Assembly (NCBI GenBank): GCA_002189035.1
Contig: CM007989.1
Span: 3,844,001-3,908,000, forward strand
DNA: 64,000 nt
Direction of reading: 5' to 3'
Source: Utricularia gibba
Lineage: Eukaryota; Plantae; Magnoliophyta
Shown: positions 14,079 through 39,200 of the stretch, one piece after another
How the letters are laid out: the number at the start of each line of letters is the position of its first letter
Position numbering within the stretch: position 1 is the first letter of the stretch
The notes under the pieces: model-generated
What the model was told of the DNA's origin: nothing
What the model saw: the letters and a program-made list of their open reading frames with translations, nothing else
Database searches by the model: none
Program-made: the position numbers and the translations under genes

Positions 14079-16331
14079 TCAACACCGAGGAAGATCGGAC
14101 GGCGGAGGGAGGATCTTCTGGTCAGGGCGGTCCCCGTCGAGCACAAGCCAGGCCATCTTCAAGCCCCAGCTCGTGTGAACCTCCAAATGGCAGTGCATGA
14201 ACCACACACCTGCAATGGGTTGCCAACCCCTCTCTCCGTTAGTTCAATTTTTAAGGAGTTCGATCGAATTTACCGAACAGTAGAGGCATGGACCTGGATT
14301 GTCGGTAAGGAAGCGTATCGCCACCCAACCGCCGACAGAAACTCCGACGGTGTTCCTCTCGACGGGGTCAACCAGGTTGAACTTTGCAGGACCCTTACTG
14401 GGATCGAAGTTGCCAAAGCCTTGACCCACGACGAAGAAATTGAATCCATGGAGATGCAGAGGATGGCTCTCCGCTCCGAGAATGCTGGTTCCCTGCAACA
14501 CCAGTTCCACGCTGGTGTTGAAGGCAAGGACCACGAGCTTTGTCCCGTTCGCGACTAAAGTGTTGTTAGGAGGACTCCCCGTGTAGTTGAACGAGTGCAA
14601 GGGGTCGTCGGGAAATCGGAGGTGTAAACGCCGTTCGACTTGCCGGAATAGTGGGCCTGAAGTAACGCTGTCGTCGGTTGAACGAACGATATGTTGTTCA
14701 CGGAGGCCGAAAACTTCGTCCCGTTTGGGCCTCCACAGGCCGTACTCTGGTCGCATGGATTTGTTCCTAATCCTACTGTAAACAGAAATTGCTTGTCTAC
14801 CTGCATCACAGTTTCGTACTCTTTTCAAATTCGGAACTTAACTTTTATCAGAGTACCAGTGGCATACCGTTTGCGGGACGTTGGCCGGAAACCTAGGGGA
14901 CGCTAAAGACCGTAGCTTTCTCGCAAACGTATCCGCGAATCGGGTGTCATTCAAAGAAGGGAGAAAGGGTCTGTACGAAGGGAGCCCCTGTACAGAACGT
15001 TTACGCCGCGACTGGTATTCCAGAACTCCGGCGACGGTCGAGTTATCGAAGGTTCCTAATCCGGTGGCGTACGGTCGCGCCAGCATAAAGAACGCGGCTT
15101 CAGGGGGCCGAGCTTTCGTCTGTAGTAGAACGTTCATGGTCTGCCCGGGAGTTATCAGAACCACATCACTCGTGAAGGGCTTAACGTACACGGCGTCCAC
15201 GTCCACCACCGTGAGGCTGTGGTTCGCGATGCTGAAGAAGAGCTCGTCGTTCAGCGCGGCGTTGATTAACCGCAGCAGATACGTCTTTCCCGGTCTGACT
15301 CGCAGCTTGAACGTTTCTGATAATCAAGCGCAGCGAGAATCAGCTTTGCTTTTCAAAGCACACAACAGCAGCAGAAGAAGAAGAGGAAGGAGACTGTTGT
15401 ACTTAACCATTGGCGGAGCAGTTGTAGAGTGGACCGGGTAGACCGTTGATGGTGTACGCATCCGAGACATTCGGACCGGCTCCGGTCTGCAGCGATTGTT
15501 GTACAATTGCTTCCGTGTCAGCATTGAACCATTCCCTGCAGCGTCTTACCACCATAAGCTTGTAAAATATAATAAAACAATATGAAATATTAAAATACTG
15601 GTATTTTTTCAAAAATTAAAATTATTATTTAATAAATTTTTCCGATGCACAAATTTAAATATTTATTTATTTATTTTTATAGGTGCTGTGGAGGGGTTAC
15701 CAAATATGATTGGGAGCTGCTTGTAGGGCAGAGCGTACGGATAAGAAGTGTTTTTGGGAGGGAGAATGATGAGAGGGCCGTAGACGGTGGATCGATGCCA
15801 GGAGATGTGTGCATGCCACCAGAGGGTTCCTCTTTGTCCGACGATCGTGAAGTTGTACTTGTAGCTGGCTCCCTGTTGTATGGGGCACTGCGTTATGTAC
15901 GCCGGCCCGTCGGCCCATCCGTTCCGCAGCTGCCGGACGCCGTGCCTGCGAGAAGGGAGAATGAAAAGCAGAGTGTTTTGTTTGTATTGGGTAGGATAGG
16001 ATACCAGTGGATGGTCATGTTGTCTTGGACGTGATTGGTGACCTCGACGACGAGCCGATCTCCTTCCCGGACGACGATCCGGGGGCCGGGGAACATGCCG
16101 TTCACGGTGACGATTTCCCTGGTGCTGCAGAGCCTCGTCACGTTTTGCTTCACAATCTGCAGCAGGAGATAGCATAGCAGTGAGGGATACCAGTAAACAG
16201 AGCTCACTCAAGAAACTGCCAAGTGCCGTTACATTGAAGTGGTAGTGCCGAGTGGCGGCTCGTGCATGGTGGGAAAGAGTGAAGACAAGCAGGGAAAAAG
16301 CGAAGCAGGAGTGGAAGCTGGAGAAATCCAT
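14079..16331 (-). CDS. Laccase (LAC17/LAC2-like), 7 exons, with an apparent 1-nt frameshift near 14601-14604 (possible pseudogene)
   Basis: Signal peptide and all four Cu motifs (HW|HG, WHAH, HPLHLHG, HCHLEVH); ends [11 protein letters not shown]. The frame changes between ORFs 14555-14809 and 14244-14828 with no intron. Confidence 0.9.
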
Positions 16332-18351
16332 GACGAAACGGGGATGAAGGAAAGAACGCTTTATTACCTCCGGGTGGGGAGTTTGGTCGAGTAGGTGGTG
16401 TGCAATCGACATGGAGTAGTGTGAAAGGCAACTTTTGGTGTGTCTGGTCTGGCTCTGTTTGGTAGTTGCCATTGGGGTGTCGCTGTTCCGGGTTGGTGCT
16501 GACCCAGTCCCCTGGTCGCGGTGGATGCATCGTGTTCGACGTTCGACGGCGTCGCTCTGCGAAACTCGCTGAACAAGACGACCGCACCACCGGCGGGCAA
16601 GTGTCACATTGAAGCAGAATCTCTGCCGCCGTCGCAGGCTGTAAACATTCACTGACTCGAGTTGGATTCTTGTCCAATCGCAGACAATCATCCCTCATTA
16701 TTATTATGATTTTGTAATATTTCAAAATTGATTTTTATTTATTTTTGAAATTAAATAGCAATAAATTAGATACCAACTTCCCTCCAAACTAAACCCCCTT
16801 TTATTGTAAATATTTTTTTATCAATACATATATATTTTTCCCTTTTTATAATAAAAAATTTAGAAATACGTAACTTCAATTGTAGAATTTAAATGACATT
16901 ATCTCATATAATTATTCAAAATATAATCATATTAATCAAACTCTAAACCCTAAACTTTATATTCATATTAATTTAAATAATAAATTAATAACTAATATAA
17001 ATAATCATGAATAATTTAGAAATTACATTTTTTTTTTCAAAACATAACGAATAAATTATTTATTCAATTTAAAAAATAAAATTCAAAGTTGATTTAAATT
17101 TTTCTACTTATAGAAAAGGTTTTTATTAAGAATATTATTAAACACGGACAAATTCTAATTTAAATAAGTTTCTTATTTTTTGAAAAGTTTCATAAGAAAT
17201 ATATATATAATTTTTTGGGGGGGGTTGTTTGGGAAGAGGAGGGAATAATGCCCACGGTTTAGTGAATATTTAGCATTTGGTTATTAATGGAAAAAAAAAA
17301 AGGGGGGGGGGCCGCATGGAGCGAGATTAATGATGCGTACACTGAAAAGGCTATCAGGCTATGTCATCTCCAGCTCTGGTTGTACTCTCAGCAGTACTCG
17401 GCCAGAGCCATCATCTACCAAATCTCCGACTGTCATTCAACCATCATGGATGACACATTAGCCGCCACAGCTCCATTTTCTGAGATAAAATAGATATAGA
17501 AGTTGCAAAACAAGCTCAAAACAAGAACAAGAGCAAGCCACAGGAAGCTCATACATGAAACAACAGATCCTGATTTTGTCTACTCTTCTAGTCCTACATG
17601 TTCTGCTTTAGCTGATGGAAGAGAGTAGTACACATTGACAAATGCTATTGAAGTATCTATCTCACGAGAAGCATGGATTATGCATAAGGACACAAGCAAC
17701 TGATTCGATTCGACTGTTTTGATGTAGGTCTGTGTGTATGAGTTGTATTATTGTGTTTTCCCAGCCTACAGAATCTCGTATTTCAATAGATATGCCATTT
17801 CATGAAGTGGGACACTTTTCAAATAAGACTGTCCTTGCAGCCAAAATTGGGAAAGAGCCTTTTTCCTTGCGCTAAGAGAAGCCTGGTTTCCCAGTGCTGC
17901 TTTCTGTCAGTTTCATGGTTATTTCAAAGATTAAAACAGTGGCCAGGAATCCCTTTAATCTCCTAGTATTAACTATTTGTGACCCGGAAAGATGACACCT
18001 ATTTCTCAAAAGAAGTATACAAACAGACAAAAGGATAAGGGTCAATCAATTCTGACCTCTTTACTGCAAAATCCTGCTGTCAAAATCTTCAGGAACTCGA
18101 GTTGAGCTGCAGAATCTGCATCAAAAAAACAAAGGTCATTGTGTGATAAAAGATCCCCCCTGAAACGGCGCTGTCAACAAGGGAGCTCTCTGAGCTCACG
18201 CAAAGCTTCAAGATGATGATGATGGTTCACACTTACTCATACTCCCCAGGCCCTTATCTTCTAGCTAAGCAATTCTCACAGTGTCGTATCATATAAATGT
18301 AGACCACAAATGGCTGCTATGGTAATCATTCCATCCATCCTTGTTTCCCTC

Positions 18352-18358
18352 TATAAAA
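18352..18358 (+). promoter_or_regulatory. TATA box of the CLE gene
   Basis: TATAAAA about 110 bp upstream of ATG 18464. Confidence 0.5.
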
Positions 18359-18463
18359 GCTCACACATTTCTACTCAGATTCTCATCGCTTCTTCAATTG
18401 TTCTCCTTGCACTAAGCACAAGTTTTGAAAAAGGATAGGCTTTGATTTGTTTTGATTTTTTCA

Positions 18464-18891
18464 ATGGCAAGGATTGCGAGCTCTAGGCTTGTATGTTTTC
18501 TTCTTGTTATCACCCTCCTTATCAGTGATTTCTCTGGTAAGAACAAGATGATTCTGTGAAGTATAAAGTTGAAAATAAATGATTCTGAGTACTGAAATTG
18601 GTTCTTCTGATGTTGTGGCAGAGTGCAGCACACAGGGGAACAAGTTAGAAGTACTGCAGAGAGAGGTACGATATTTCTAGCATGATCTCCAATATGCATT
18701 TACGTAGAAATATGACTAAGATATATCATACCTTCCTGAAGCTACTCTTGGAATCGAGGAAGATGGCCATGAAGAAGGATTCCGGCGGGTATGAGAATGG
18801 AGTGATCCCGGAGAAATGGAGGAGGATTCCTGGAGGCCCAGACCCATTGCACCATAATGCGAATGATCCACAGAAGCCCCAAGCCCCATGA
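18464..18891 (+). CDS. CLV3: CLAVATA3-like CLE peptide precursor, 88 aa, exons 18464-18536, 18622-18665, 18742-18891
   Basis: Signal peptide MARIASSRLVCFLLVITLLISDFS; phase-consistent GT-AG introns (73+44 nt = 39 codons); CLE box RRIPGGPDPLHH followed by a CLV3-like tail NANDPQKPQAP*. CLE family is certain; CLV3 orthology is inferred. Confidence 0.85.
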
Positions 18892-19317
18892 GATCTACTT
18901 GTTCTGCATCTATCTCCTTGCTTACCTTCTTTTTGGAGGCAAAATGTTCAGTTAACGCCGGAAACAGAAGCTCCATATATGTATTTTCCATGTGTTTTGA
19001 GGAGAAAAGGGCTCTGCTAGATCTTGTTATGCCACTGGCAGTAGGAATGCATGTAGTAGTTCTTGAGTAAGGTGATGAACATAGTAAGATTTTTTTTGAG
19101 GCATTTCAACAAACAGTTTGCGTGCTTTATCCTGGAAAGCAGTGGCTCTCCTTTAGGAGAGTTTGATCTTCCGTCGATCCAGCTTCATAGTTACTTTCCA
19201 AATACACTCGGTAAAGAAAAATTTTGAATCGAAAGGACCTGCAGATTTAAGAAACCTGATCGGAGATTCACAAAAAGGCTTCCGGCAGCTCCTCCCATAA
19301 CCTTGTGATCACCTAAC

Positions 19318-19485
19318 TGGGCCGGCCCGTGTAAAGCCCAAAATGCAACTCGAAGTCTAAGATACAAACGTGAGTCTGTCCCTAAACTACACTACACAAG
19401 GCCCGTCATAACTGTGCCATGGGCCTCGGGTTCCAAAGGTGGGCATAGCCGGAATCTCAGCGCCGTACTTTTTAGTGCTTGGGCT
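19318..19485. promoter_or_regulatory. Cluster of site II (TGGGCY/RGCCCA) motifs in both orientations
   Basis: TGGGCC 19318, AGCCCA 19335, AGGCCC 19399, TGGGCC 19420, TGGGCT 19480; upstream of the small-protein gene. Confidence 0.5.
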
Positions 19486-19929
19486 AGCCGGCGCCCACCC
19501 ATAAGACCAAAAAACTACATCGGGGATCGGATAAGCAACCATCCAGAAACATTGAGCATCAGGTTTTGTACTTCCGACGCCATTAGCCGGTACGTATGCC
19601 TATCGTCGATCCCTTTTCGCATTCAATCATGGTTTGAGTGATTCGTTTGTCACTGTTTTCAATGTATCCATTATTGTTGAGGTTTAAGTTTCTGTTACGG
19701 ACTACGGAGTAGTCCTCTTTTTCGGGTATTCGCTTTGGAGGTGTTGTTATGGCTAAATGTTTTTGCTTTTAGATGTTTCCAATTGAACTTCGACCTGGGC
19801 CTCTGGGTTTTTATTCTGATTTGAGGTTCTGAGAGCATGCTGTCTATGGTTGCGATTTTATCTACTGTTTTCAGTGTGCCTTATTTCCTGGTTGCTTGAA
19901 TGTCTCCCATGAAGGGAGCTAGTTCTTTG

Positions 19930-20045
19930 TTGCATTTTGTTTTTCTTCCATCGAATGCAAACTAATTCTTTGCCTGCATTTTGTTTTTCTTCCATTGAAT
20001 GCAATCTAATCCTTGGTTGCATTTTGTTTTTCTTCCATTGAGTGT
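19930..20045 (+). repeat. About 2.6 copies of a 43-44 bp tandem repeat
   Basis: TGCATTTTGTTTTTCTTCCAT recurs at 19931, 19975 and 20018. Confidence 0.85.
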
Positions 20046-20078
20046 AAATTCTGTGAATCCATTTGTTGCAGAGCTTGA

Positions 20079-20315
20079 ATGGGGAACAAGCCTGGAAAGC
20101 AAGAGAAAGATGAACCCAGGATGCCAAAGATTGTGCCTCCTCTAGACCGTGCATATACACGTTGGCTAGCACGCGATCTAGACAACATCTACGGCATCCA
20201 ACCCAAAAATCCAAGAGCTGTAACACCTCCTGATCACTATATTGAATACATGCATCTGAATGGATGGCTGGACTTGGACCTTGATGATCCGGATCTCAAG
20301 CGGTTATTCAAATAA
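20079..20315 (+). CDS. Small plant protein of unknown function, 78 aa
   Basis: MGNKPGK...KIVPPLDRAYTRWLARDL...PPDHYIEYMHLNGWLDLDLDDPDLKRLFK*; ATG 7 nt after a TTGTTGCAG acceptor; resembles a small conserved plant family I recall but cannot name. Confidence 0.75.
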   Translation: MGNKPGKQEKDEPRMPKIVPPLDRAYTRWLARDLDNIYGIQPKNPRAVTPPDHYIEYMHLNGWLDLDLDDPDLKRLFK

Positions 20316-20581
20316 ACTTGGAAAGATTGAGCCAGATTTGTGTATGATGTAGAAATGGAACAACTTCTTGTTTGTAAATGCCTATTGGCAGATAAAGGAA
20401 ATGAATTCTCTTTGCCATTGTCATTGGTTTGTTCATGTTCTTAGAATTGCATCTGCTTCCCTGAATGAACACTACTAGCTTTGTTGCTGTTCCCTCCATC
20501 AAAGAGGCTCCTTTTCAACAGGCAATGATCAAGCATGTTATTACAGAGAGAGAAGAACAAAACATGTTCATCAGCTGATGA

Positions 20582-21315
20582 TCATTTCTTCTCCTGATCA
20601 ACCTTCTTCCCTATCCAACTAGCAACTACAGGTGTAAGAGCAACCGTAGGTGGAAATCGAATCGGAGAAGCAGCCTTGTGCGCGGCGTAGGCGAGTGCAA
20701 ATGTTCCCACCTTTTCCCCGGTTTCATTACTCGAAATACCAACCTGAAAAAGAAGAAAACCAATTCAATTCCTTCCATTCAACATACACTATGATCGTGT
20801 GCGTTTCAACTCTCCATCTGTTTCAATTACCTTCTGCAGCAATGCTGGGACGTCGACGCCGGCGCTGATGAGACCGTAGCATAGTCCAAAGGATATCAAT
20901 GACAAGGTGATTGAAGTTGCGAGATAAGCTCCTCCATATTTCGCCAGCAGCTCTTTGGCTTGATCTCCCTTAGACTTTTTCTCTCTGTCTCCTGAAAATA
21001 TCTGCATTTACGGAGTCAAGTAATGGGTGACCCTGAAATCACCGTAACAGAACACAAAAACACTCAAAAGGTTGAGCAAAGATCGATCACCTTCCAAAGC
21101 CCAGCTTCAAGGCCATACTTCTCAGTGATTTGTTCCGCAGATTCCGGGCTCTTGATTTCCTCTGTTTTCTCCCGAACCGCTCTAATCTTAAACCCAGTGC
21201 TCCTGAATCCGGACCCAATTAGTCTTCTTCCTATTCCATCGCTTTGTATTTGGGAGAACTTAGGATTTGGACAGATGAAGAAGCATTGGGGCGAGAATTG
21301 CAGAAGAGCAGCCAT
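20582..21315 (-). CDS. DUF1279/FAM210-like plastid protein (3 exons)
   Basis: Transit peptide; ITEKYGLEAGLWK|IFS; AKELLAKYGGAYLATSITLSLISF; FALAYAAHKAASPIRFPPTVALTP; ends KKVDQEKK*. Confidence 0.9.
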
Positions 21316-22119
21316 TTCTTTATCCAAAACCTTATTGTGTTTTGTGAGCATATAAAGATGAACTCATAAATCGTGATCCTGGATGAGACATGTAACACGA
21401 TTTCCAGCCACTGGGGTTGAAGCCCGGATCAAAATCTTCCCCACAAATAATTACAATACAGTCGTGCATTTTTTCTAACTTAATTTAATTAATATGTATT
21501 TTAATTCTTTATTATTTAGATAAATATATTATATTTAACAGACAAATGTAAATGTTATTACATTTGATAATATATTTAGAATAAATAAAAAAATCAAAAC
21601 TGAATTGAATTTTTGATAGAAAACTTATTTTTAATATACGTAAGAGTTTTTATGAAAAATCAAATATTAATTAACGTGAAAATTCAATATGAGCTTGCCA
21701 TTCTATTTAAGTTGAAAAATGATCTCGAGTTAACTCGCCACCGAGCTCGTGGAACAAACATTTTACTAGAATTGTAGGGTCCTCGGAGATCCAAGAACCC
21801 TCCAAAAATAGGAGTATGCCGCGTAGTGAGGCAAGCACACGGTATTCTTTAGTAAAAGGCGAAAGAATAGTTCGCTCTGTGCTTACCTCGCGGCTGCTTG
21901 AGGATGGAAGACAATGTTTGGTGTATTTATAATGATAGACATCTCATAAATCTTTTTATTTTCCGATGTGGGTTACGAGTTCTATTTATTTTTTCATTTT
22001 TGAAAATGGAAAATACAAACCGGCGTAAAAATGAAACGGGAACCCGTCTTTGGAAGTGGGATTGAATTCGGATGATTACTTCGGCAGTCAGGAGTGGAGC
22101 TGTCGGGAGTAGCAGGGAA

Positions 22120-23922
22120 ATGGCCTTGATTCCGAGCCCGTCGGTGGATAGTGAACCCTTGTTTGCGGAGGTCAGCATGCGGGGCAAAGCGTCTACGGTC
22201 ACCGTCCGAGCGACCGTGGTCCAGGCAGCCACCGTCTTCTATGACACCCCTGCTACTCTGGGTAAGTTCAGTTTATTATGTTCTTTCGGATTCGAAGGCG
22301 GACGAGACGAGGGGTTAATTTTTTGTTGGAGGTTGGTGAGTTTGCATTCCTAAACTGACTTCTGCTGGAAATCTTTCATAAACCTACTCGTTGAACATTG
22401 GTATGTGATCGGGTTGGGGCTTGTGATGATTCTGATTTGCATTCATCAGTACACTACCAGCATGAGCAATTTGGAAACAGTGTGGTCATTGGTGCGTTTT
22501 GTGCCAACAAAATTCTAACTTTTGCTGTCAATTGTTTTAGGTTTCCCATTAGGTTCAGGCACTCTTCATTTTACCAGGAATATGAACTTTTGTAAATAAT
22601 CCTGCTCTTCCTTGATTATGATATCAGATAAAGCGGAGAGGCTTTTGGCTGAAGCAGCGTCATATGGTACTCAGTTAGCTGTTTTCCCTGAAGCATTTAT
22701 AGGAGGCTATCCTCGTGGATCTACCTTTGGTGCCAGCATTGGAAATCGTACAGCCAAGGGAAGAGATGAGTTCCGGAAGTATCATGCTTCTGCTATTGAG
22801 GTTCCAGGTGTGGTTGCCGTAGAATGCCTTTCCTTGAGAAAATTGCGACGTGCTTCCTAATCGTGTTGAGCTGAATGCTTTTGGAAATCACCAAATGATA
22901 GCTGAAAATTATCCGTTTGCTTATTGCTTTCATTCTTTTCCTGCATAACTTCATTATATAGTTTGATGTTGTGATTTTCAGGACCTGAAGTTGATCGTTT
23001 GGCAGCTATGGCTGGAAAGTATAAGGTGTATCTTGTGATGGGTGTGATAGAGCGAGATGGGTATACTTTATATTGCACTGTTCTGTTTTTTGATTCTCAA
23101 GGCCAATACATTGGAAAGCATCGCAAAGTCATGCCAACAGCCTTAGAACGCGTTATTTGGGGATTCGGAGATGGTTCAACAATACCTGTTTTCGAGACAC
23201 CAATCGGAAAAATTGGTGCTGCAATTTGTTGGGAAAACAGAATGCCACTTCTAAGAACTGCATTGTATGCTAAAGGTGAGATGCATTTGTATTCGCCAAG
23301 TCACATGCTTTTTGATTATGGATATTTGTGATTTCTCATGAGCACTAAATTTAATCCATCTTTGTTCATGAAATCATTATTTTTTAGGAGTCGAGATATA
23401 CTGTGCACCAACTGCTGATTCTCGAGATGTATGGCAAGCATCAATGACACACATTGCTCTCGAGGGTGGTTGTTTTGTGCTTTCAGCCAACCAGTTTTGT
23501 CGAAGGAAAGACTACCCACCTTCTCCTGAGTATGTTTTCTCAGGCATTGAAGATGATCTCTTGCCAGAGACTGTTGTTTGTTCAGGTGGTAGTGTAATCA
23601 TCTCTCCTTCTGGAACCGTGCTTGCCGGCCCAAATTATGATGGAGAAGCACTGATATCTGCTGACATAGGTCAAGATTACTTCTTTCCCATATTCAACTT
23701 GCACTTATTACTTTCCCTTGCATTGTTTCCTGAGTTATTGGCAGTTATTTGATGTATCTGCTAGATCTTGGAGAGGTGGCTCGAGCAAAGTTCGACTTTG
23801 ATGTTGTTGGCCACTATTCGCGACCAGAGATCCTGAGGCTCATTGTTCAGGACAACCCAATGAGTCCTGTTTGCTTCACTTCACCCTCTACTTCCATGAA
23901 AGCAGAAGGCTCCAAGCGATGA
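22120..23922 (+). CDS. NIT4: Nitrilase 4 (beta-cyanoalanine nitrilase/hydratase), 5 exons
   Basis: [19 protein letters not shown]; catalytic triad motifs [25 protein letters not shown]; [10 protein letters not shown]. Confidence 0.95.
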
Positions 23923-25259
23923 AGTCTTTCTGCAACGGCTATGGCGATCTCATCTATCCACTTATCCAGCATCGGAAGTAGTAGATAGTATGCCAAGAAA
24001 CAAGATGCCTGAGAATCATTGAGCAACAACACGGACCCTGCAGAATTAATGCAAGTTGTTCGCATGGGCTCTTATTGTCTTTGTGGCAAGAAACAAGATG
24101 CCTGAAAGTTCACTTCAAGAAAAAAACTGCTGCTGCAAATATTTTGTATTATTGCTGTTGTATGGCTAGATGAGGGGGAGCATAAGATTCCTCTGCCATT
24201 GTCTCAATTGCATAAGCCCCAATATGCAGCTGATCTTTTTTTTTTTTTTTTTTTTTACTGTCAAAACATGCGCCTGCAACGATCCGATCCCTTAAATCTT
24301 TGATACCTGGTATCTTTCCAATCTCCTATGTGCCTTCTCCCCATATCGATAGCAATCTACATCGCCATGTGTTCTCTCCCATGAATACCCATTCTGTGCA
24401 TCTTATCTCTGGTTTTGTACTAGGATTTTCAGCTGGTTCATACCTGGTAACGCTGATCCAAAAAAAGCCCTTGTTCAGATCTTCAACGTCCAGGGCAATG
24501 GAAGAAATTCAGTATGTTCTTCATTTGCTTTCACAGTTACAATTGTTGGATTGTGATTCAAAATCAAAAGAGATACTTTCACAAGAAACTAAGTTTTAAA
24601 ACTAAAAGAGAAACATTGCGAAAAGCAACCTTCCATGCAAACAAATATATCCGTTTCCTGGCATCACAGCAGACATTTAGACAAATCCCAAATCAGATGT
24701 GACAAGGAACAACCCATGTTCTCTGTTTTACCGTTGTAAACACTAAGCTTTGCCATTTGTCAACATAAAAAAACAATGAACAACTATAAATTAGTGGGAG
24801 CAGTAAGCGGTTAGTTATAACTCCAGATCATAATCATCCTCTGCTAGAGGTGCAGAAACAGACCTTCTTTTCTTTCCCCCTCTTCAATGTTCTGCTAGAC
24901 CCCATCCCCTGCGGAATACTAGGAATGATAGAGGAAAGCCCCTGTGCTTCATGCAAATTTCTGAGATTTGTCTTGATCCCACCCGAGAAACTGATCCATG
25001 TGATGATGGAACCAGGGCCCCATCAATCTCCCACAAATTTGCAGCAAGTTTAACCCAGTTTAGAAACATACCTAGGAAGTCTTTTTTGATTACAGATGAA
25101 TCGGGGCCATCTCAAGAGATCTTCTTTTATTACCCGGGAAGTGTCCATATTTTACCATTAATCCATTACTGTGAGAATGTCATATTTACCCGTAAAGTAT
25201 GCGCTTTCCAGTCAGAAACATGTATGTTCATACAGGGGGATGAAATGGATACAAAGGCT

Positions 25260-38451: not shown

Positions 38452-39009
38452 AACAGTGTTTCTGCTGAATACTTCACTGCACCATAAGCTTTTCAGCGCA
38501 CGTCTGTAAGATGCTTTGTGCTGTCTCTAAATCCTGCGATGCTAAATCTGAACTGACATGAAAATAGTACTACACATTAAATGTCCCAACTTTCCATCTG
38601 TGCCTCTGCATAAATACTCCCAAGGTATAAAGCCAGAGTCCAAACTCCTGTTTTCAGGTTTTGTGATCAGATGGGAAGATAAAAAGCAGGAAAATCTTTA
38701 CAAAATAGCTACGACTTTGTGGTCAGCAGGAATCCTGTAGAAGCCTTTATTCTTATTCCTCTACAAAAGATGAAGTAGAAATGCTCATTGTTCTCAGAAA
38801 AGGACTTCCTACAAGCTTTTTGAGGTGGAATTCTGAACGTACATTCAATCTCATCATGTCGCATATGATGCTATGCAACTGCCAATGTTGCACCGGTAAC
38901 TGCCGGACCAACTAAGAGCCTCAAGTCCCATACACGTGCAGATGTTCAGAAAGGAGCTGCAATTTTAAGCAGAGCAAATTGATGTTAAGGACTAAATGGT
39001 TCAAGAAGC

Positions 39010-39200
39010 TTAGTAGAGATACTCTCCTGGTGGGTGTGGATCACACAATATGAAGTCGGGTAGAAGACGCAAGTCAGGAGATGCCCTTCCTCCATCTGGG
39101 CTTCATCTAGAAATGAATCTCCGGATGCCGTCTTCACAGTACAAGTGGAGCAAGCACCAAGAAAAGCTACTGTTCTGATGCAATTTCAATTCCCTTTATA
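39010..39200 (-). pseudogene. Root-type (Fd III/FD3-like) ferredoxin remnant, C-terminal half only
   Basis: [46 protein letters not shown], then a 1-nt loss before (D)LY*; no recognisable intact N-terminal half. Confidence 0.85.

Follow-up and report, generated by a model that had tools for sequence, protein, structure and literature searches.

A probable CLAVATA3 orthologue in Utricularia gibba with lineage-specific peptide changes and a shortened cleavage-site flank

The stretch of Utricularia gibba DNA analysed here, 64 kb in length and referred to as the window, contains a small three-exon gene on its plus strand between 18464 and 18891 that encodes a single CLE-type signalling peptide, RRIPGGPDPLHH. 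The question raised by this locus is whether it is the CLAVATA3 (CLV3) gene of the bladderwort and, if so, whether a ligand of this sequence should still work. The original prediction, made from the letters alone, had called it the CLV3 orthologue with an atypical, divergent ligand. We consider it likely, with a probability of roughly four in five, that the locus is the CLV3 orthologue of this Lamiales plant (Lentibulariaceae) and that its ligand works, perhaps with somewhat altered processing or potency. The gene is real, spliced and transcribed, its peptide is a mild variant in sequence, and the novelty is a change at the maturation site.

The coding sequence totals 267 nt over three exons and gives an 88-residue precursor, the parts of which are as follows.

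18464-18536, plus strand: exon 1, coding part, 73 nt, with the ATG at 18464 and phase 1; it encodes MARIASSRLVCFLLVITLLISDFS and the first base of a Glu codon
18537-18621, plus strand: intron 1, 85 nt, GT..AG, phase 1, the same phase as in five relatives
18622-18665, plus strand: exon 2, 44 nt, translation (E)CSTQGNKLEVLQRE
18666-18741, plus strand: intron 2, 76 nt, GT..AG, phase 0
18742-18891, plus strand: exon 3, coding part, 150 nt including the TGA stop at 18889-18891, translation LLLESRKMAMKKDSGGYENGVIPEKWRRIPGGPDPLHHNANDPQKPQAP
18817-18822, plus strand: Trp/Arg1 junction, an alignment gap where relatives carry two extra codons (Glu-Leu)
18820-18855, plus strand: CLE box, the presumed mature dodecapeptide, translation RRIPGGPDPLHH
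18856-18888, plus strand: C-terminal extension NANDPQKPQAP, of the CLV3-type pattern N-[GA]-x-x-P-x-K-P-x-x-P

The original prediction had the coordinates, the spliced 88-residue precursor and the CLE box right, and it had also recognised that the list of open reading frames (ORFs) shows a false N-terminus: the 69-residue ORF at 18682-18891 begins within intron 2, and its first 20 residues are intron. The true N-terminus, MARIASSR-LVCFLLVITLLI-SDFS, is hydrophobic and signal-like and aligns with the N-termini of Lamiales CLV3 proteins; exon 1 thus carries a putative signal-peptide core, and we infer that the signal is cleaved. The N-terminus is followed by a variable middle, one CLE box and a CLV3-type tail, a layout that is collinear with the Lamiales CLV3 precursors throughout. 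Apart from the CLE box, the six frames of the window contain no CLE-like motif. R1, P4, G6, P7, P9, H11 and H12 are kept, as had been pointed out, and D8 and L10 are kept as well; every residue reported to be critical for CLV3 is present in RRIPGGPDPLHH.

For transcript evidence, contigs of four public runs (X1-X4) were placed on 15500-21000. A 224-nt contig of run X1 lies without a mismatch on 18434-18535, 18621-18663 and 18740-18818, and its joints at 18535/18621 (cut +1) and 18663/18740 (cut +2) are exactly the predicted GT..AG introns. Unused splices had been named beforehand as grounds for rejecting the prediction; both introns are removed in this contig. The run is RNA-derived, since contigs of neighbouring genes are spliced too. 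Transcript depth over the CLE gene is 3.15, and the contig ends two bases before the CLE box. At its other end it covers part of the leader.

18434-18463, plus strand: 5' untranslated region (UTR), given as the extent of the X1 contig, whose start is a contig end rather than a mapped transcription start

In run X2, from a second study with the same species label, one contig covers 18732-18977 at about 94% identity to the window; it shows 4 differences within the 150 nt of exon 3 coding sequence and 10 in the 86 nt of 3' UTR covered. Of the coding differences, one turns a Ser codon into Phe and two are synonymous, among them the sole difference within the CLE box (T>C at 18847; a diverged allele or a relative). 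The coding part has no indel and there is no insertion at the Trp/Arg1 junction. A second, diverged genotype therefore retains the peptide and its short flank, and conservation is higher in the coding part than in the 3' UTR.

Homology searches were carried out with single exons or the genomic ORF rather than the joined 88-residue protein. A phmmer search with exon 3 against 1.84 billion proteins (representatives) gave 9 matches, and the seven with a single motif are all of CLV3 type, coming from Buddleja, Perilla, Sesamum (two), Morus ("protein CLAVATA 3"), Parasponia and Melastoma. A profile built from these seven matched 341 proteins; among the 120 profile matches listed, dozens carry the name CLAVATA 3 or CLV3/ESR-related, most of the others being hypothetical eudicot proteins without a name. 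Arabidopsis CLV3 was not among the matches listed and stands outside the alignments. The Pfam family listed for five of the CLV3 relatives is PF27922. A word-index search with the exon-3 part of the 69-residue ORF gave no candidate sharing three words, which reflects a limit of that method when set beside the 341 profile matches. The bladderwort gene itself seems to be absent from public protein collections. In a tree of 57 sequences and 65 columns of exon 3, with no CLE40 sequences among them, exon 3 is nested in a 16-row, all-Lamiales clade (ultrafast bootstrap 99, Shimodaira-Hasegawa-like approximate likelihood ratio test (SH-aLRT) 91), several members of which are named "protein CLAVATA 3" by NCBI. 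The CLE phylogeny that had been proposed as a check thus places the gene among Lamiales CLV3.

The exon structure points the same way. In alignment, exons 1 and 2 are collinear with the N-terminal parts of the Lamiales CLV3 proteins, and the exon lengths of 73/44/150 nt in the window compare with 76/44/165 in Buddleja, 76/44/156 in Erythranthe, 73/44/156 in Handroanthus, 79/44/156 in Sesamum and 76/62/159 in Morus. Intron phases are identical between the window gene and these five relatives, and all four Lamiales relatives have the 44-nt exon 2. Most CLE genes are without introns, which are present in all members of the CLV3/CLE40 group, and CLV3 orthologues bear a C-terminal extension (PMC4526924). 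The tail pattern of the window gene is found in 111 of 118 CLV3-type relatives with a single motif, the set from which the residue counts below are also taken.

Upstream of the ATG, comparison with the CLV3 promoters of Handroanthus, Erythranthe, Buddleja and Sesamum, the four from which consensus patterns were derived, gave the following elements.

18277-18294, plus strand: promoter box 1, CACAGTGTCGTATCATAT, 187 nt upstream of the ATG, aligned with four Lamiales CLV3 promoters
18311-18330, plus strand: promoter box 2, TGGCTGC-N6-AATCATT, its order and spacing matching those in the four Lamiales CLV3 promoters compared
18352-18358, plus strand: putative TATA-like element TATAAAA within the conserved block TTTC-CTCTATAAA, from the promoter alignment

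The consensus of each box has one match in the window, against 0.07 (box 1) and 0.05 (box 2) expected by chance, and both boxes together with the TATA block occur in the same order and at a similar distance to the ATG in five Lamiales. What the Lamiales CLV3 promoters have in common, about 150-210 nt upstream of their start codons, is CAYAGTGTCWTATCATRT and ATGGCTGCAT-N3-CAATCATT; the second box resembles a homeodomain-type site, which reads CAATCATT in Lamiales and TAATCATT in the window. The boxes support common descent of the locus and, as sequence motifs, suggest that its regulation is conserved. We found no earlier description of them and regard the 18-nt and 20-nt boxes as candidate CLV3 regulatory elements. 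Farther upstream, at 17197-17320, there are long A/T runs followed by G runs (tttttt-gggggggg, aaaaaaaaaaa-gggggggggg) that may be assembly-prone; 17197-17235 was skipped as a repeat in read placement.

The surroundings of the gene agree with those of other CLV3 genes at the scale of the region. In Erythranthe, Handroanthus and Sesamum, CLV3 is flanked by a Pyr_redox_2 gene (thioredoxin-reductase-like) and a PPR-E gene, with ALMT genes beyond. The Erythranthe region adds a leucine-rich-repeat (LRR) kinase and an upstream LEA_2 gene, Buddleja and Morus retain PPR-E beside CLV3, and Buddleja also has the LRR kinase. When ORF pieces of the CLV3 loci of these five relatives were compared with the window by tblastn, the CLE gene was the sole match. 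The order in the window is the CLE gene (plus strand, 18.5 kb), a GH17 gene (minus strand, 37.1-38.2 kb) and RPL10a (minus strand, 40 kb), and the same order and orientation occur on one chromosome of Buddleja, with CLV3 on the plus strand at 2.855 Mb and GH17 and RPL10a on the minus strand at 3.46-3.485 Mb; the distance from CLV3 to the GH17/RPL10a block is 19 kb in the window and about 617 kb in Buddleja. CLV3 and GH17 lie on one contig, or have near locus tags, in Orobanche, Perilla, Salvia hispanica, Canavalia, Carya, Nyssa, Pterospermum, Abrus and Ilex, among others. The GH17 gene of the window has its best matches in Lamiales proteins called "glucan endo-1,3-beta-glucosidase 14", with no annotated protein exceeding 78% identity, and is sister to a Genlisea aurea protein (SH-aLRT 99) with which it has a long common stem, a placement that most likely assigns the plant to Lentibulariaceae. 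The Arabidopsis GH17 gene is, we assume, At2g27500. Arabidopsis CLV3 is AT2G27250, FD3 (ferredoxin 3) is AT2G27510 and RPL10aB is At2g27530 (PMC6812778, PMC3585428). The window holds about 15 genes in its 64 kb and has the appearance of the ancestral region in compacted form. Of the synteny that the original prediction had invoked, the regional part, with the GH17 and RPL10a block, holds good, and the part concerning immediate neighbours does not; its claim of orthology is supported by the clade, the intron phases and 44-nt exon 2, the tail, the promoter motifs and the regional collinearity.

How unusual is the peptide? The most frequent dodecapeptides among the relatives are RKVPSGPDPLHH (41 of the 118), RRVPAGPDPLHH (13, all of them Lamiales where checked) and RRVPSGPDPLHH (11), while the exact RRIPGGPDPLHH occurs in none of them. 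Text searches of the literature found neither RRIPGGPDPLHH nor IPGGPDPLHH nor PGGPDPLHH, and the papers found to mention Utricularia together with CLV3 describe no such gene. Metagenome scans for the CLE box gave no match and then one GC-rich bacterial match, which was discarded as chance. Taken singly, Arg at position 2 is found in 30 of 118 relatives, Ile at position 3 in three (RKIPSGPDPLHH twice and RGIPAGPDPLHH once) and Gly at position 5 in one (RGVPGGPDPLHH, in a protein labelled Physalis CLV3). To call the dodecapeptide atypical was therefore an overstatement, since Arg2 is common and Ile3 and Gly5 are each found in other CLV3 orthologues; what is new, measured against the Lamiales norm RRVPAGPDPLHH, is V3I and A5G, and these are the only lineage-specific changes.

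Both changes sit at positions known as tolerant or tuning. Position 2 of the CLV3 peptide is variable outside Asteraceae, with Val3 and Ser5 favoured; single Ala substitutions at positions 2, 3 and 5 have a negligible effect, and the Asteraceae combination Ala2-Ala3-Leu5 strongly attenuates activity, which has been modelled with position 3 opposite a conserved receptor glycine and position 5 modulating BAM1 binding (PMC12236821). CLE1/2/4/5 regularly have Gly5, and Ile3 is found in CLE19, as in RIIPTGPNPLHN and RLSPGGPDP[QR]HH (PMC4895270), and CLE1 complements clv3 when placed under CLV3 regulatory elements (PMC3878228). Because single Ala substitutions are tolerated, Ile3 and Gly5 are normal in other CLE classes and CLE1 complements clv3, we expect the ligand to be active; a shift in potency would be possible, if unproven.

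The oddest feature of the gene, overlooked in the original prediction, lies just outside the peptide. Arg1 is directly preceded by Trp, where all seven aligned relatives have W-[EQ]-L or a variant of it. Residue -1 is Leu in 116 of the 118 relatives, Phe in one and Met in one; residue -2 is Glu in 104, W-E-L as a whole is found in 79, and Trp at -1 occurs in none of them. The conserved Leu at -1, a group trait rather than a formal criterion of membership, is missing here in that the Trp is kept and Glu-Leu deleted, and this deletion accounts for the 6 nt by which exon 3 falls short (150 nt against 156 nt in Erythranthe, Handroanthus and Sesamum). In Arabidopsis, correct cleavage depends on the five residues before Arg70; Leu69Ala impairs both cleavage and activity of CLV3, and Leu69Lys is cleaved and tolerated. 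In CLE1 the cut follows a Met, and the authors judged flank length to be more important than flank identity (PMC3878228). Cleavage in the bladderwort may well proceed, because five residues (IPEKW) still precede Arg1, and the Trp/Arg1 flank is a unique natural variant of the cleavage site.

Several points tell against an orthologue with a working ligand. Trp at -1, given the role of Leu69 in Arabidopsis, might reduce maturation by analogy. No CLE40 was recovered by the searches. The terminal branch of exon 3 is long (0.70 against a median of 0.16); the GH17 gene of the same lineage is also on a fast branch in its tree, and much of the long CLV3 branch is therefore a lineage-wide effect. No remnant of the LEA_2, Pyr_redox_2, PPR-E, LRR kinase or ALMT neighbours was found in the window by tblastn with all ORF pieces of the five loci (E<=1e-4), and with the immediate neighbours missing, positional orthology rests on the regional collinearity and the promoter motifs. 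CLV3 copy number was read in the window, so a second copy elsewhere in the genome is possible, and the evidence for expression comes from one transcript assembly (X1) of unspecified tissue, so that expression in the meristem would be an assumption.

These points could be taken to mean that Ile3, Gly5 and the lost Glu-Leu have re-tuned or weakened the ligand by lowering its maturation or its receptor affinity, in which case a looser stem-cell brake would have a share in the unusual, indeterminate way in which bladderwort shoots are organised, comparable to what has been proposed for the RAAPL motif of Asteraceae. We think this unlikely. It is true that the changes at positions 3 and 5 stand beside the variable position 2, and that these are the positions at which changes jointly attenuate the Asteraceae CLV3 peptide (PMC12236821); that Leu69 and the five-residue flank matter for cleavage (PMC3878228); that neither the Trp at -1 nor the exact 12-mer is found among the relatives, nor the 12-mer in the literature; and that the changes are retained in the diverged X2 sequence. 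However, the exchanges of V for I and of A for G are conservative, active CLE peptides carry Ile3 and Gly5 (PMC4895270), CLE1 with its Gly5 rescues clv3, and flank length counts for more than identity, L69K being cleaved and CLE1 being cut after Met (PMC3878228). Moreover, the lineage evolves fast in general, and a weakened ligand would be a prediction from the sequence. That the bladderwort lineage as a whole should have re-tuned its CLV3, with an Ile3/Gly5 ligand and a Trp/Arg maturation site that would be less efficiently matured or bound, is in our view quite improbable; such a ligand would perhaps go together with an altered receptor, the CLV1/BAM pocket having changed near the LRR6 glycine.

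The remaining explanations concern what kind of gene this is. Assignment to another CLE group, either CLE40 or a CLE1-7-like gene as the PGGPDP core might imply, is very improbable. CLE40 genes have introns too (PMC4526924), the core is typical of CLE1/2/4/5 (PMC4895270), and the tree is without a CLE40 outgroup, yet the nesting at 99/91 is among Lamiales proteins several of which bear the CLAVATA 3 name, and the gene has the CLV3-type tail, the 44-nt exon 2 and the promoter boxes in common with Lamiales CLV3, as well as linkage to a GH17/RPL10a block that in Arabidopsis and many eudicots is found close to CLV3. Beyond the CLV3/CLE40 group, predicted introns are absent from most CLE genes (PMC4526924), and in radish the CLE1/2/4/5 peptides carry Ser at position 3 and either Gln or Arg at position 10 (PMC4895270). 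Between CLV3 and CLE40, the names of the nearest relatives and the linkage to the block near Arabidopsis CLV3 point to CLV3. CLE1-7 genes are not known to have introns; the window gene has two, departs from their motif R-x-S-P-G-G-P-D-P-[QR]-H-H by its Ile3 and Leu10, and has only Gly5 in common with the group. It is equally hard to credit that the gene is a decaying or redundant copy left by whole-genome duplication, transcribed yet no longer functional as CLV3. A long terminal branch, the loss of the immediate neighbours, a two-codon deletion of near-invariant residues and a low transcript depth are what such a copy might show, but its frame is intact, its introns are precisely removed, the critical residues are all kept and the promoter boxes are conserved; between the two diverged sequences the coding part has changed less than the 3' UTR, with a CLE-box change that is synonymous, and low depth is expected of a gene active in few stem cells.

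If the locus is the CLV3 orthologue, as we prefer to read it, then its gene structure, transcription, splicing, homology and conservation can be fitted into what is known of CLV3. The precursor would enter the secretory pathway, Pro4 and Pro7 would be hydroxylated and Hyp7 arabinosylated, and a secreted subtilase-type protease would cut before Arg1 while the C-terminal tail is trimmed, releasing a glycopeptide of 12-13 residues, RRIPGGPDPLHH(N). This peptide would presumably bind LRR receptor kinases of the CLV1/BAM type and repress WUSCHEL, restraining the stem-cell pool.

Run X2 also contains a possible transcript from the opposite strand.

18732-18977, minus strand: first exon seen of a possible antisense spliced transcript in run X2, joined to 18057-18115 and 17361-17479

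The joints at 18115/18732 and 17479/18057 have CT..AC ends and are chained by three X2 contigs. This candidate minus-strand transcript overlaps exon 3 of the CLE gene and its 3' UTR and bypasses exons 1 and 2; it is seen in X2 only and not in X1, X3 or X4. Provisionally, the minus-strand blocks can be taken as antisense RNA or as the long leader of a multicopper-oxidase gene at 14.2-16.7 kb, one side of a joint being 28 nt.

Other genes of the window were noted in passing.

19544-21350: pair of small, well-expressed genes in tail-to-tail arrangement, immediately downstream of the CLE gene and fused by the contigs
about 19544-19588 and 20071-20398, plus strand: exons of an AtTam9-family gene, with an ORF at 20079-20315
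around 20457-20741 and 20829-21007, minus strand: exons of a FAM210/DUF1279-like gene
22600-24000, plus strand: multi-exon CN-hydrolase gene whose exons read like nitrilase 4 (beta-cyanoalanine nitrilase) and not like N-carbamoylputrescine amidase
38985-39137, minus strand: short ORF between GH17 and RPL10a that looks like the C-terminus of a plant ferredoxin

The identification of the CN-hydrolase neighbour with NLP1, presumably At2g27450, was dropped, as its sequence reads as nitrilase-4 type. Together with a FAF-domain gene at 35.8-36.4 kb and RPL10a, it recalls what we take to be the At5g22300-At5g22440 block of Arabidopsis, presumably the sister of the At2g27xxx block. The ferredoxin-like ORF fits the position of FD3 in Arabidopsis and is given little weight; its 49 residues had no match in Pfam. 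A stretch of 39 nt at 19093-19131 is 85% identical to the Sesamum PPR gene adjoining CLV3 (E 4e-6) and may be the last relic of the lost PPR neighbour. We did not accept it as evidence, because the weak tblastn matches are not collinear and the motif (DKARKLFVEMPQK, minus strand) is a generic PPR one.

CLV3 is the central brake on shoot stem cells, and in crops its natural or engineered variants affect organ number and the form of the inflorescence; according to a recent preprint, a change in CLV3 also altered form across the sunflower family. An exact, transcript-supported gene model is now available for a lineage whose genome is compact and whose body plan is highly unorthodox, and it offers two testable differences, the peptide RRIPGGPDPLHH and a precursor with Trp in place of Glu-Leu before the cleavage site, the second of which is a natural experiment on the requirements of the CLE-maturing protease. 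Should the peptide be as active as those of its relatives, the finding is simply a correct annotation. Should the ligand after all have been re-tuned, this would be the second natural case, after Asteraceae, of a body plan changed through modification of the CLV3 peptide, and a weakened stem-cell brake would contribute to the indeterminate, organ-blurring shoot system of bladderworts.

Among known systems, the closest are the CLV3 genes of other Lamiales, those of Sesamum indicum and Salvia miltiorrhiza being named "protein CLAVATA 3" and those of Handroanthus, Erythranthe and Buddleja being listed as hypothetical proteins. They have a collinear precursor, R-R at positions 1 and 2, the GPDPLHH core and the tail N-x-x-x-P-x-K-P-x-x-P in common with the window gene, with up to 60% identity over exon 3, and they differ in a peptide that reads RRVP[A/T]GPDPLHH where the window gene has RRIPGGPDPLHH. 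CLV3 of Arabidopsis thaliana (AT2G27250, peptide RTVPSGPDPLHH) likewise has introns and encodes a pre-propeptide for secretion, with a single C-terminal CLE box followed by a Pro-rich extension. The two genes are identical at R1, P4, G6, P7, D8, P9, L10, H11 and H12; the window gene has R, I and G at positions 2, 3 and 5 where Arabidopsis has T, V and S, and the residue before R1 is Trp in the window gene and Leu69 in Arabidopsis.

The CLV3 peptide of Asteraceae, with its RAAPL motif, resembles that of the bladderwort in that lineage-specific change is confined to positions 2, 3 and 5, with a core and C-terminus like those of other CLV3 orthologues (PMC12236821). In contrast, the Ala2, Ala3 and Leu5 of Asteraceae have been shown to attenuate activity and BAM1 binding, whereas the Arg2 (a common residue), Ile3 and Gly5 found here are known as letters of a sequence, and the Asteraceae study reports no deletion in the flank, unlike the window gene (PMC12236821). 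The CLE1-CLE7 group (SPGGPDP[QR]HH) has through Gly5 the same PGGPDP core as the window peptide, but its peptides carry Ser3 and Gln or Arg10 (PMC4895270), where the window gene has Ile3 and Leu10 along with two introns and the tail and promoter boxes of CLV3.

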